Origin: Oculina patagonica
Taxonomy: Eukaryota
DNA length: 64,000 nt
Reading direction: 5' to 3'
NCBI RefSeq assembly: GCF_052425735.1
Contig: NC_135760.1
Span: 14,942,001 to 15,006,000 of the forward strand
Numbering within the stretch: the stretch's first letter is position 1; each line of letters starts with the position of its first letter. The notes below the pieces were generated by a model that saw nothing but the letters and a program-made list of their open reading frames with translations, did not search any database and was not told the DNA's origin. The position numbers and the translations under genes are program-made. Below, in pieces: positions 36,101 to 45,100 of this stretch.

Positions 36101-39100
36101 CAAAACCTCACGGAAAAGGTATGTAGTTTGTTGCACCAAATCAAGAAGAAAGATTTGAACCAACGTTTACGTCCTCTTCACTAAACTTGCCAAAATTGTA
36201 TTTTAATTATGTTGTGATCTTTTTATTTACAGTGTGTTCCCGTGCAATGGACGTTGGTTTAATCGTGGATGCATCTGTAAACGTTGCCGGAAGAAACTTC
36301 CTTCGCATTCGTAACTTTTTGAAACAAATCGTGGCGTCCTTCTCTGTGTCCACATCAACCACTCGCTTTGGCATGGTAGAATTCGGCAGTTATCCAAGAA
36401 AATTGTTCGATTTCAACCGCTTCCCAAATCAAGCAACATTAATCAATGTGCTAGGTCGTGTGCCGTACATGAGAGGTAAAGCAATGGCGGGAAAAGCTTT
36501 GAAATATTCCGCCCTGACACTTTTCTCACGCACCACAAGGCAGAAGGTTGCCATAGTGATAACTGGCAAGTCACTTGACACGGTTGCAGCGTCCGCGCGC
36601 GTTTTGCGGCGCGTTGGCGTGAAGGTGATCACGGTGGGCGTTGGACGTTATAGCGTCGCGCAGCTGCAACAGATGGCTACCAACAAAAGAAATGTGCTTA
36701 CGTCGAACTTCAAGACGCTGAACAATATTGTCAGAGCGATCAAGCAGAAAGCTTGCAAAGGTAAGTTTAGTGTTTCTGTGTTGCTCAAATAAACTGTAAT
36801 AAAAATGTAATAAAACGTTCACTAAGTGATAGGAATAACTTATTTAAGCGCATATTGCAAAACTACTATCATGAAAAAAATTTCAAGCAATCTCAGTAAA
36901 CCCTTAGTAGGCCCTTGCGTTTTCAAATTTGTCTACTGTGATTTGTTTTCATGCTCAATTGTGTCAGACCATGTTGAGTACTCTGCTACAGGTTGAAAAT
37001 CATCACTTTGGGACATAGATACGTTTGGTGCATTTCTTAGGATCTCTATTCAGTTGATAGAACGCTTATAGGTGTCAAAGGGCCAATTATAAGTTAAGTT
37101 ACAATACAAGTCAACTCTCTCTTCACAGACACTTCTATTAGACGGACACCTGGCGTTGGTCCCGTCCCTGTCGTTTTCAGTCATTTTACTGTAACTAAAC
37201 TCCTTATAAGACGGACACCTCTCTACAGACAGCTGGAGCCGGTCCCGACGGTGTCCGTCTTAAAAATAGTTGGCTGTACTTATTTTGCGGATGACATCCG
37301 TTTATTATAGCTCAATCAGATAAGAATTCGGAGCGTATTGTAATACTTTCATTGATTTGATATTTGTAATTTTTGCACTGTATTTCTTAGTTCCTCGTCC
37401 TGTCCGTCGTCCCTTGCCAGTGAGACCCCGACCAGGTGCGTACGGAACATGGGCTATCTATTTTAATAACTATTAAAAATTCCATTTTAGATTTCTAAAC
37501 TTACAACAGTGTTTTAAACCACAGCAAAGAGGTCACATTATTTACCTTACTATCTACTCACTCTTGCCACGATAGGAGGACGAAAGCCGTACAGATTCAT
37601 CGGAGCCTACAAAGTCCCACCCAGGAGATATCTTGGCAGGCCAATACCGATTAAAAATCCTATATATGGACGTATTATCTGCGAGCGTATAGCCCGCCGG
37701 GGCCGTTACCGAGTCTTTGCAGTGCGTGGAGGTCGTCAGTGTTTTGTTTCTCGCAAGTCCCCCCGTAAGTTCATGGTCTACGGCCGAACAAGGTCGAGGA
37801 AACCTGGAGCCAGTATCAAGGTCTACATCAAACCCAGAGGTTAGTGTTTTAAAGTAGTGTTTTTAACATCTTAATAGAAAACCTTCACTACTGGAAAAAA
37901 AATTGTCGTGAACCTGTGGGATGGAAAATTTGATAGGAGTATCAGTAGGTTTGAGCATGGGCTCCTGGTTTGAGNNNNNNNNNNNNNNNNNNNNNNNNNN
38001 NNNNNNNNNNNNNNNNNNNNNNNNNNNNNNNNNNNNNNNNNNNNNNNNNNNNNNNNNNNNNNNNNNNNNNNNNNNNNNNNNNNNNNNNNNNNNNNNNNNN
38101 NNNTGTACATAGCAGACGATCTTGTTAATCTATCATGATTGGCATTTTTCAAACAGGTCGACCAAGGCCCAGGCCTCGACCCAGAATACGGCCTCGACCT
38201 CGTCCCAGACCCCCTTCTCGACGCAAGCCGCGGCCAGTGAAACTGCCTTTACCAAGACCAAGACCTAAACCAGGTTTGTTGATATATTCATCTAATGACA
38301 GAAGGTGGAGCATGTCGGCTTTTTCTTGATTATAGCGAATTGTTCCAATCAAGACTTTAATTAAGTTTTACGATAAATACCAGCCACCTATCCATAAAAC
38401 GTTTAATAAGTAACATTTGAATTCATCAATTTGTAGGTGGACGAATAAGGCCCAGGCTCCGACCAAAGCCGCGACCAGGTCAGTATAACAATATTATCTT
38501 TCATTCGTGTATTTTTCTTTATTTCAAGATTTTTGTTGAATACTGTATTAAATCTTTTTTTCTAATTTTCTTTTTCCCATAAGGAGCAAAATACAGATTC
38601 TTTGGTCGCTATCGCGCTCCACCCAAAAAGATACTTGGTAATCCCACAGTAACATTGCGGAGTCTGAAGTATGCAAGAAGGAACTGCCAGCGACTGGCGC
38701 GCATGCGCCGTGCCTGGGCATATGCTTTGCGATTTGGTCGCCAGTGTTACATTGCTATAAAGAGTCCACGCAAGTTTACAAAGTATGGTCTCCCTCGAAC
38801 GAAAATGCCTGGAGCACTGAAGGTTTATATTGCGAAAGGTAAAGAGAAGGCTGATTCTCTTTCTAGAAAGTAGCATCATACGTACAACAGAGTTCAATCT
38901 ATTTTTGCCTCAGAGCCCATGATTCTTCTGGTCTGCACCAGGGATCGAAATTGGAGGCGGCCAGAGGTCTCGATCCCTGGCGCAGACCAGAAGGATCGTG
39001 GGCTCTGGGGAGGAGAATGAGCGCAATTACTCATAACCCGGGTCATAAGGAACTATTTGATTTGTCTTTATGTCTGATGTTAGTTACTTTACTAGCTCGC

Positions 39101-42100: not shown

Positions 42101-45100
42101 ATGACTGTTTACAAGATAGGAAGAGGTAAGGATAAAATGCCAGAAAATGCCAGCGATTGAATTTCCAAGCCTTTAAGGGACAGTGTCATTAGAAATCTTC
42201 TAAGTTTCCGTGTACAATATTCTAGAAATACGAGGATGCACTCACTGTTAAGCAAAATAACCTCTGAACAACAAAAGAAAAGCACGAAATCATTTTCCAA
42301 GAATTTAAACAAACCGCAATCAATGGTTTTTAAGAAATTACCCTTCAAGTAAAACTGTCAAACTTGAAAACATCGGCCCGACGTTTTTAAATTTGAGGCC
42401 ACTTCTTTCCTACCAGTCTGTACCCAAACCACGTTTTAACAATTTTCAGGACTTGTAAAGTACGTTTTAGCAAGGCCAGGCCACTATAAGTGGCATGGAT
42501 TTACAATTCATACCAACACCTTCACGGGATTTTCAAATTGCACTTAATCTTGGTGATACTGCCCCTTAAAGTAAGGTATAGTTTCACGTGTGGCCGCTTA
42601 CGGGAGGTGGTCGTAATTGATTTCATTTTGTTACCAGGACGCCTTAGACCACGACCAAGAGGGAAAGTCTGGCACTACCGATATATAGGCCGGTACAAAT
42701 CTCTCACACCAAAGCGCTTGGGTCGGTTTGTTGGAAGAGTGAGGGGAACTAAGAAAGTGTTTAAATGTGCGCGCCGTGCTAAGAAGATGGGTTATCGGGC
42801 GTTCGCTTTGCGTAACCGAGGAGACTGCTACGTGTCAAGGTATTCTTCAACTTACTCCACCAAGAAGCGGTTGTTTGGACGTTTCAAAGGAACTTCTGGT
42901 CAACCACGTGCCATCGATGCTTATGTGATCGGAAAGGGTAAGAGATTATAGCAACGCTGAGTCTGGTAGCGAGAGCAAATGCCATTGTTAGCAAACCTTT
43001 GTTGAGCACTCTAAGGGTTTTCTATCCCGTTATCTAATTCGAAAGAAGCGCGAGCACTCACGAAGACTTTAGTTACCTCAACATGGTGCGATCAGCATAC
43101 GTCATGTCGATTAGCAACATTTGGTGACAAAAACCGCAGACTCAGTGAATTCGCGGCCTCAACTAGTACATACTCCCTAGTCTGCAAAGTGGGTACATTC
43201 GGGATGAAAATAAATTGACAGATGCAAGGTTACAACAGACAAGAAATAATCTGTAATGCTTCGTCAAGAACGACGACTGTTCTGTTTTGCTGGTTTGTTT
43301 TGTGGGTTTTTTTAAATCGTTCAACTCAAATGTTTTCACAGTCATTGTGCACAAAAAGGCGAGCGCAGTTGCATATTTTAATTAATATTAAAACAACTTT
43401 AGTGTCCACGTGGGTAGAAATTCGTGAATTGTGCTTAACACTCAACCCAGACATTGCCGTATTGAATCGCTTAATTAAACTTCCATTGTTTGTTCTTTCT
43501 TTTAAATTGATTTCAGGTCGTTTCAAGCCTCCCCCCAGACCTCGTAAAGGAGGCTCTGTTTGGCATTACCGTTGGCTAGGGCGTTACCGATCACTAAAAG
43601 CGCGCGGCCTGGGAAGGAAGTTAGGCCGAGTGTCAGGACGAAAGAAAGTATATAGCTGTGCTTTGCTGGCAAAACGCATGGGTTACAAAGCGTTCGCTTT
43701 GCGTCAGCGAGGGATCTGTTATGGCACTCGTTCATCTAGAGCTTACACATCCAAACCAGTCATCAAGGGCCGCTTTAGGGCCGGCGCGGGGGGACGGCGC
43801 TTCATTGATGCTTATGTAATAGGACACGGTATGTCGTGTAGGAATGTTCTCTGGATTATAAAAATCTCAAAGAAACAAACAGTTAAAAAAGAATGTTGTG
43901 GAACACCTCCAATTTAAACTTGCTAATATATGTTGGCGTTCTTTGAAATGGATATTTGCGTGTCTAAATTATAAAAATTGATGATTGTGTTATTCTGACT
44001 TTGATCATTTATTACCGGAACACATTCATACGACGCTGTTATTAATTTATTCCTACGGTTTTGTTTCATTCCAGGTCATTACAGACGGCCAATAAGAAAA
44101 GGCAAGTACTATATTTTTTTAAGGCGAACTTTGAATCAGATTGTTTTTCCTTTTCTAAAGATTTCAGATATTTCATCAATCGCAGACTTTTTGCAGAGGT
44201 TTTGCGCCTTTAATAGCCGAGCTACTACTATGAAACTTTAAACAAAGCGAATCCCAGTTTGTTGACCTATAGATTTAGCTAAACCAGAATTAACGTCAAC
44301 TTCAAATGCAGTCCGGTTCTGTTCTTGATCTTTAATTCAAGTATTTTATTAATCTTAGATTAAAAAGGGATCAAAACCTTTGTGAACCCTTAAACCCGAA
44401 TGATTATAATTGCACACGGGCAATTATTGTACGCCAGTAATTACCTTGGACAGCAGAGATACGCAAAGAAATACGCGCGCACAGTGTCCAGTGGGAGTTT
44501 GGGAGATTGGGGACCACATATGCTGATTTAATCTTTTATAATAAAATTTGGCTTACTTACCTTTTTGCAGGAGTTAGAGGTCGCTCAAGGAAAGCAAAAC
44601 AGCGAAGACGAAGAAAGCAAATAAGAAAGAATAGAAGAAAGATCAGAAGAATCAAAAGAAAGAGAGCACGAATAGCAAAAACACGAAAAATTAAAAGAAG
44701 GATAAATAGACGGATACGGCGACTGAGAGGACTGAGAAGAAAAGCTAGGAGAGCTGCTATACGAGCCAGGCGTCTGAGACGATTGGGAAAAATTAGACGA
44801 CTGCGGCTGGCAAGGAAAGCGAAACTGGCTTTGGCCAGGAGAATACGGCAGATGAAAAGGAGAATCCGGGCACGCAAGTTACGACTAAGGCGACGATTAC
44901 AACGAATGCGCGCAGCAAAACTGCGAGCTAGAATGCGACGAGCGAGGAGAAGAGCCATGCGCTTGTTGAAATTGAGAATGAGGCGGCGCATGCAAAGACT
45001 GCGACTATTGGCGCAAAAGAGGAGGGCCCGTGCACTGAAAATGGCCAGGTTAGCGCGTTTGAGGCGGTATCGAAAGCTAGCCAGGTTACGAGCAAGACAG

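Follow-up and report, generated by a model that had tools for sequence, protein, structure and literature searches.

Seven cationic modules of probable WSC descent in a putative matrix protein of the coral Oculina patagonica

In an attempt to characterize a repetitive, strongly basic coding block in the genome of the coral Oculina patagonica, we analyzed a stretch of 64,000 bases (NCBI RefSeq assembly GCF_052425735.1, contig NC_135760.1, positions 14,942,001–15,006,000 of the forward strand; hereafter, the window). Coordinates without a contig name are counted from its first base. On the + strand, positions 37576–43828 encode seven modules of ~86 amino acids, with one phase 1-1 exon per module, and four (Arg-Pro)n exons are interspersed among the module exons. 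We consider it very probable that the modules are derived from WSC domains, expressed, and conserved. The 769-amino-acid block formed by these exons is best explained as an internal part of a single, giant matrix protein that the coral secretes. The best explanation of the whole, i.e., a WSC-derived array in a matrix protein that acts as a polyanion binder, has in our estimate a probability of roughly 0.6.

The modules and their relationship to WSC domains

The three-frame translation of 37300–44100 contained seven related, stop-free segments rich in Arg and Lys, with Arg-Pro runs between them. A hidden Markov model (HMM) made from the seven copies was searched against the complete window translated in six frames, and gave exactly seven strong matches (88.6–121.6 bits, with E values between 1e-26 and 1e-36), each of them on the + strand; the next-best match had an E value of 0.39. 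The original prediction had placed seven copies at 37576–43828, and both the number and the limits were reproduced: the exon of module 1 does begin, and that of module 7 does end, at these two positions. It had also stated that the list of open reading frames (ORFs) missed module 1 entirely. The start of this module is indeed absent from the list, as the frame lacks a start codon, but its last 40 codons are included. When the module profile was applied to the 529-Mb assembly, only these seven modules exceeded 90 bits; the best match outside the array scored 48 bits, and the matches at 48 bits and below were relatives with four Cys (4-Cys) located elsewhere.

The modules are 32–54% identical to module 1, and three Gly, a Leu, both Cys, an Ala, and an Arg are invariant across the seven. 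Each module in the window carries a net charge of +23 to +30. The initial description of a hyper-cationic module of ~85 amino acids with two Cys therefore held, given the length of ~86 amino acids, this charge, and the invariance of both Cys in 33 modules, i.e., the seven window modules plus 26 orthologues from several species. The spliced block of 769 amino acids has a net charge of +249 and a calculated isoelectric point of ~12, and is composed of 24.4% Arg, 10.9% Pro, 10.1% Gly, 8.7% Lys, and 6.5% Tyr, with only 0.8% Asp and Glu together. Aromatic residues (Tyr, Phe, and Trp) account for 13.8% of the module residues, and each linker exon encodes 14–39 residues in a run of the RPRPRIRP type. 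The basic residues of the modules are spread out rather than clustered: adjacent dibasic pairs ([KR]R) were about half as frequent as expected, numbering 19 in the window modules, compared with 35.4 in composition-matched shuffles, and 76, compared with an expected 118.9, in the 26 orthologues (alignment A4). The alternating strand pattern is the probable cause of this depletion.

The only Pfam family that recurred was WSC (PF01822), with weak matches in register in 14 of the 33 modules (best E = 0.0089). In the window, module 6 (16.1 bits, E = 0.014, profile positions 13–61) and module 5 (14.4 bits, E = 0.044) matched, and the other five modules gave no match. Pfam PAN (PF00024) matched neither the window modules nor the 33-module set, and when the module profile was compared with the PDB sequences, nothing matched up to E = 10. 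The same profile retrieved many Pfam-confirmed multi-WSC proteins, e.g., Nematostella A7RFD4 and proteins of Styela and Orbicella. On inspection, they proved to be members of a 4-Cys WSC subfamily of animals with the consensus GCYKD ... C(helix)xxxA ... GYxxFAxQxGGxC ... YGxSxxC..GKGG..ANxVYxI, and all 11 of the domains extracted from this subfamily matched PF01822 individually. When the seven-module profile (A2) was compared with the 11-member 4-Cys set (A3) in hhalign, the probability was 97.8% (E = 9.5e-13), with 78 of the 86 columns aligned. WSC clusters were likewise indicated by a language-model feature search. In the modules, the GCYKD motif has become G-[R/A/L/T]-Y-[K/R]-x, and the position of CGG or GKGG is occupied by PGA or GG in modules 1–5 and by GAGG or SGQP in modules 6 and 7.

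Cationic forms that retain four Cys were also found (P0125, P0093, and a copy in the same genome, L005). P0125 (L001:1624-2394) joins the C-terminal half of a VWA domain to a cationic 4-Cys module, the start of which resembles those of modules 6 and 7, in a single uninterrupted exon. Within the O. patagonica genome, the nearest paralogues are 4-Cys WSC-like exons at C3:19677957-19688832, on the same contig as the array and 4.7 Mb away. Among these, L005 is already cationic (25% Lys and Arg), and is possibly an intermediate between the ordinary 4-Cys domains and the two-Cys modules. Elsewhere in the genome, 4-Cys WSC-like exons that are almost identical to one another and moderately charged form large tandem arrays with a spacing of ~510 bp, at C5:13545000-13551000 (L006) and also at C4:7.83-7.90 Mb, C1:26.24 Mb, and C4:62.16 Mb. 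The 4-Cys WSC-like family is strongly expanded in this coral.

The check by AlphaFold and Foldseek proposed in the original prediction was run on modules 1 and 7, and solved WSC domains were the best matches of both. The AlphaFold2 model of module 1, for which the alignment held the seven paralogues only, had a predicted local distance difference test score (pLDDT) of 91.2, and that of module 7, from the 33-sequence alignment, had a pLDDT of 83.2. The models follow a strand-helix-strand-strand-...-strand order and contain the WSC core, i.e., a PAN/Apple-like five-stranded sheet around one helix with the L5 wrap. In Foldseek, the top PDB matches of both models were exclusively WSC domains, covering residues 1–86, with template modelling scores of 0.71–0.72 for yeast Wsc1 (7PZ2), 0.63–0.69 for Kremen1, and 0.65–0.68 for glyoxal oxidase. 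The VIA-align Z scores were 8.3–8.8 for the WSC structures and 4.1–6.4 for PAN/Apple structures. A second tier of fold matches was formed by HGF NK1, including the heparin complexes 1gmn and 1gmo, and the matching AlphaFold-DB clusters included several WSC-annotated proteins, many of the remaining entries having no protein name.

The pattern of lost Cys residues agreed with these results. In yeast Wsc1, the disulfides are C27–C86, C49–C69, C53–C71, and C90–C98 (PMC9024836). From the Kremen1 alignment and the hhalign columns, the 4-Cys subfamily retains the equivalents of C27–C86 and C49–C69. The modules retain only the equivalents of C49 and C69, which link the helix to strand beta4, and the C27–C86 pair, which links beta1 to loop L5, is gone. 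A bridge of the C49–C69 type is also conserved in PAN/Apple cores. Thus, as the initial reading of the sequence had suggested, the Cys of GCY, the Asp, and the distal Cys have been lost and one putative disulfide is left. Relative to the 8-Cys WSC domain, the six lost Cys are three complete disulfide pairs, and losses that always include the partner are what a preserved fold predicts. The weak PF01822 matches, the hhalign result, the predicted structures, and the Cys map all bear out the WSC-like origin that had been proposed. To judge from these sequence comparisons, the direct ancestor appears to be the 4-Cys animal WSC subfamily rather than an 8-Cys domain, with one further pair lost. The stripping took place in two steps, from 8 Cys to 4 Cys and then to 2 Cys, and the recharging accompanied the second step.

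Exons, splicing, and conservation of the array

All 11 exons have AG/GT flanks, a length divisible by 3, and phase 1-1, the codon divided at the border being that of a Gly (G|GN), and when joined they encode the 769 amino acids with zero stops. Module 1 (37576–37839, + strand as for all the exons below; 264 nt, net charge +25, HMM 121.1 bits) was covered by spliced contigs at 37574–37837 in X1, X2, and X6. It is followed by linker exons RPa (38157–38273; 117 nt, 39 codons; joints on both sides in four runs) and RPb (38437–38478; 42 nt; joints 38271->38435 and 38476->38582 in four runs). Module 2 (38584–38838; 255 nt, 121.6 bits; contigs 38582–38836) has the orthologues P0004, P0010, and L008_2, and is joined through RPc (39358–39423; 66 nt; joints 38836->39356 and 39419->39866) to module 3 (39870–40130; 261 nt, 115.9 bits; contigs 39866–40129), the orthologues of which are P0008, P0009, and P0011. 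RPd (40574–40678; 105 nt, 35 codons of RPRPRIRP-type repeat; joints 40129->40573 and 40677->41074) precedes module 4 (41075–41335; 261 nt, net charge +30, 93.3 bits; contig X3 record 13; orthologues P0024, P0029, and L008_3). Modules 5–7 bring their own runs: module 5 (41799–42125; 327 nt, 89.8 bits; contigs 41797–42126) has an N-terminal (Arg-Pro)n run, and module 6 (42638–42937; 300 nt, 99.0 bits; contigs 42636–42936) and module 7 (43517–43828; 312 nt, 88.6 bits; joint 42936->43516 in four runs) each have a short Arg-Pro run.

Expression was assessed with contigs from four public runs, belonging to four studies and three coded organisms, which were compared over 37570–43569. Ten GT..AG joints in these contigs lay exactly at the predicted exon borders, the joint coordinates being offset from the borders (e.g., 37837->38155, cut +2). 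A single contig spanned M1-RPa-RPb-M2-RPc-M3-RPd-M4, and another covered modules 3 to 6 and beyond. The 529-Mb assembly contained no second genomic copy that might be a retrocopy. Because intron-less contigs were present in four data sets and there was no second genomic copy, transcription and splicing are the only reasonable reading, and the expectation that the exons are expressed was borne out by their splicing into RNA-type contigs in all four runs. A run of N at 37975–38103 lies in the intron between the donor of module 1 (37839|GT) and the acceptor of RPa (AG|38157). In all four runs, spliced contigs joined 37839 to 38157 in frame across this gap; therefore, the gap is intronic, affects only the length of the intron after module 1, and breaks no module.

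Upstream of the array, the gene neighbours are VWA, (GGP)n, approximately nine Laminin_G_3, and two VWA; downstream are an Arg-rich exon of 344 amino acids, Laminin_G_3, and two SUEL (rhamnose/galactose) lectin exons.

We also analyzed the conservation of the array. When the window was compared with the transcripts of relatives, 33 exonic differences were listed, 30 of them synonymous changes at third codon positions and 3 non-synonymous. The ratio of non-synonymous to synonymous substitution rates (dN/dS) relative to the array of another assembly (L008) was roughly 0.1–0.33, and dS against other coral assemblies was saturated or undefined, so these values are rough. On these coding comparisons, the block is under purifying selection. 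Searching 1.84 billion proteins with the module profile gave 231 matches at E ≤ 0.001. Among the best 150 of the 231, 33 were cationic (at least 24% Lys and Arg), and these were mostly two-Cys single-exon ORFs, each of which fits one specific module of the Oculina gene. This search returned single-exon pieces only and no multi-module gene model of the array. In total, the array was seen in three assemblies plus ~26 single-exon ORFs, the other two assemblies being taken to be corals.

In L008, seven modules occur in the order M1, M2, M4, M5, M6, M7, with another M2-like copy in last place; next come the Arg-rich exon, Laminin_G_3, and SUEL lectins. The L004 contig has six modules downstream of a Laminin_G_3 exon, and linkers of the Arg-Pro type are present in both L008 and L004, where they are shorter. 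In a maximum-likelihood tree, window modules 1, 2, 4, 5, 6, and 7 paired one-to-one with L008 modules at 96–100% bootstrap, and module 3 had no partner in L008. We infer from this pairing that the array of distinct modules is older than the split of the lineages. Across the 33 modules, two Gly were invariant in addition to the Cys; one Ala, one Arg, and one more Gly were nearly so. The net charge was +17 to +30 (mean +23.5), and Lys or Arg reached ≥70% at 15 columns only, with the basic positions drifting elsewhere. The extra M2-like copy of L008 (L008:10001-11398; P0039/P0158) lies immediately before the Arg-rich exon, and an open short intron lets ORF callers fuse the two into a 465-amino-acid ‘protein’; its cluster has 17 members from several assemblies.

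Several other features were found around the exons. Scans of 37000–44500 for tRNA and Rfam families gave no match. In the intron between module 2 and RPc, a near-perfect hairpin of ~100 nt with two inverted arms of ~40 nt lies at 38910–39015. Its summed contig depth was ~3,170 in X1, compared with ~100 over the exons, and many loose contig ends occurred on either side in all four runs. This hairpin had no tRNA or Rfam match, and its coverage suggests a repeat resembling a miniature inverted-repeat transposable element that is carried by many transcripts. Between modules 5 and 6, the intronic region 42170–42569 had a contig depth of 100–220, several indels, and non-canonical joints (42284->42444, 42280->42446, and 42464->42538), and is probably a further dispersed repeat or a retained intron, outside the coding model. 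At the beginning of the window, 2–590 on the + strand (frame 2) is an Asp/Glu-rich open frame with an Asp-dominated run of ~30 residues and a stop near 590, which looks like the C-terminal exon of a separate upstream gene adjoining the hyper-basic protein.

Possible functions of the array

The block is predicted to consist of seven small globular domains separated by (Arg-Pro)n spacers that are stiff and cationic. Each domain would be a degenerate WSC (PAN/Apple-like) fold with a single predicted disulfide from the helix to strand beta4. Nearly all acidic positions and many polar positions have been exchanged for Arg or Lys, giving the charge of +23 to +30 per domain. Such an array would no longer serve as a lectin for neutral sugars, and may act as a multivalent polycation that binds and cross-links polyanions by charge and by Arg/Tyr cation-pi contacts. 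Sulfated glycans from mucus or the matrix and acidic matrix proteins are the candidate partners, perhaps together with the surfaces of microbes. The modules would cooperate with the adjacent Arg-rich helical domain, in the way that the basic patch of the PAN-fold HGF N domain acts on heparin. That polyanion cross-linking is the function of the array, a proposal made by analogy, has in our view about an even chance. The basic residues are fixed at ~15 columns and drift elsewhere, which fits charge density rather than one defined site. Furthermore, the neighbouring VWA, Laminin_G_3, and SUEL domains are all extracellular binding modules. Nematocysts or spirocysts, the egg coat, and mucus were considered as places where the protein might occur.

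The following points weigh against the polyanion-binder explanation. First, the proposed function is drawn from composition and analogy, and the partly fixed basic positions fit a generic charge and not a defined site. Second, the gene was not found in the one coral skeletal proteome consulted, that of Acropora digitifera, for which a WSC is listed only in a PKD1/REJ protein. Third, the WSC assignment involves sub-threshold scores, as no module reaches the PF01822 gathering threshold of 27.8 bits and the best in the window is module 6, and the structural evidence consists of predictions, one of which was built from seven paralogues only. Finally, the RNA nature of the four runs is a guess, although it is difficult to account for the intron-less contigs in any other way. 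A search of the literature for cationic (two-Cys) WSC domains in corals, for this gene, and for its domain combination found nothing relevant.

In an extended form of the polyanion-binder explanation, the modules as beads, the (Arg-Pro)n runs as rods, and the 344 amino acids of Arg-rich helices would together form a polycation arm of >1,100 amino acids that condenses or templates a polyanionic matrix by complex coacervation. We regard this extension as speculative and rather doubtful. If it is true, a lectin fold would have given rise in the modules to polyanion-binding domains of a new class, which would be the cationic equivalent of the acidic matrix proteins that are well known from corals. 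If the partner is the acidic skeletal matrix or mucus, the array would bear on the assembly of the coral matrix, and might be a model for salt-tolerant adhesive or coacervate materials. In the modules, a disulfide-rich lectin fold has shed three of its four bridges in partner pairs and been recharged to ~+25 per 86 residues, with the fold apparently kept. They are therefore a clean natural case for work on domain evolution and protein design. This domain type escapes Pfam detection, and the polycationic block that it forms in an extracellular protein of the coral is very large.

Among the alternatives, a role in surface defence survives best, and we consider it unlikely. Here, the cationic domains and (Arg-Pro)n runs would bind, damage, or agglutinate microbes, with the SUEL lectins as recognition heads, either as an intact protein anchored in mucus or after proteolytic release. 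The extreme cationic charge, the likeness in composition of the RPRPRIRP-type runs to proline-arginine-rich antimicrobial peptides, and the two downstream SUEL exons are consistent with this role, and there is a report of WSC-domain proteins in the venom or secretions of sea anemones (PMC6627431). Sites of the furin type (R-x-[KR]-R) numbered 2 in the window modules, compared with an expected 6.6 (P = 0.03), and 18 in the orthologues, compared with 22.1 (P = 0.21), which is no depletion. We discarded this comparison as an argument against processing: the signal is weak in the window and absent in the orthologues, and is not clear in either direction. What speaks against defence is the architecture, as precursors of antimicrobial peptides are not usually giant proteins with VWA, LamG, and (GGP)n regions.

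A wet adhesive or cement, in which Tyr is converted to 3,4-dihydroxyphenylalanine (DOPA) and works together with Arg and Lys in the style of mussels and tube worms, could attach tissue to skeleton or larvae to substrate. The high content of Arg and Lys with conserved aromatics and the extracellular context would suit such a material. However, the Tyr content of the block is far below that of DOPA-type adhesive proteins, and many of the aromatics are at core positions common to ordinary WSC domains and are therefore probably buried; we judge this alternative improbable. Slightly less probable again is an ordinary WSC-type lectin for neutral glycans with incidental charge. The WSC fold and descent and the lectin neighbours would agree with it, but all 33 modules carry the high charge given above, compared with about −3 to +12 in most of the 4-Cys relatives, and two determinants of the shape of the WSC surface, the disulfides of the L5 loop and the CGG motif, have been lost. 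Least probable of all, and very improbable, is an unrelated new fold with a convergent resemblance or an artefact of structure prediction: it would account for the sub-threshold Pfam scores and the blank PDB sequence search, but not for the nearly full-length hhalign match, the cationic 4-Cys intermediates (P0125, P0093, and the C3 19.68 Mb copy), the loss of Cys in disulfide pairs, or the two independent models that both place WSC structures first.

Comparison with known systems

The nearest known relatives of the modules are the 4-Cys animal WSC-like domains, as in Nematostella A7RFD4 (‘WSC domain-containing protein’, P0005) and the uncharacterized Orbicella and Styela proteins. These domains have the same length as the modules, likewise form tandem arrays in secreted proteins, and have the common skeleton xxGxY...C(helix)xxxA..GYxxFAxxxGxxC...YG...VYxI. 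They keep four Cys (in beta1, the helix, beta4, and L5) together with GCYKD and GKGG, whereas the modules keep two Cys and have lost the C27–C86 pair, the Asp, and, in modules 1–5, GKGG, which places them outside the four-Cys rule of this subfamily. The charge of the 4-Cys domains is −3 to +20 (n = 11, with one at +20) and in most of them falls between −3 and +7, far lower than that of the window modules.

With the canonical WSC domains of PF01822 (yeast Wsc1, 7PZ2; human Kremen1, 5FWS; fungal glyoxal oxidase, 9N3U), the modules share the predicted fold and the helix-to-beta4 disulfide. The canonical domains have eight Cys in four disulfides, in contrast to the two Cys and one putative disulfide of the modules, which also lack the GCYxD and CGG motifs and score below the family threshold. 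The roles known for canonical WSC domains are to sense cell walls or carbohydrates and to bind Dkk, and do not include polycationic binding (PMC9024836).

The (Arg-Pro)n runs can be set beside another group of basic sequences. Peptides of the Bac7/PR-39 type and poly-PR dipeptide repeats resemble the RPRPRIRP-type linkers in composition only, and in the O. patagonica gene the runs serve as spacers within a giant, putative matrix protein.

The PAN/Apple N domain of HGF/SF, as seen in the NK1-heparin complexes 1GMN and 1GMO, has a related fold (Z = 5.5–6.4), and offers an analogue of how the modules may act: it is small and stabilized by disulfides, and its basic residues bind a sulfated polyanion. 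It belongs to another family (PF00024) and has a single basic patch, whereas the charge of the modules covers the whole surface, and no signal of sequence homology between the two was found. A PAN/Apple identity of the modules was rejected on the lower Z scores and the lack of a Pfam PAN match. By descent, the modules belong to the WSC superfamily, and by analogy the array may work like a heparin-binding PAN module repeated seven times.

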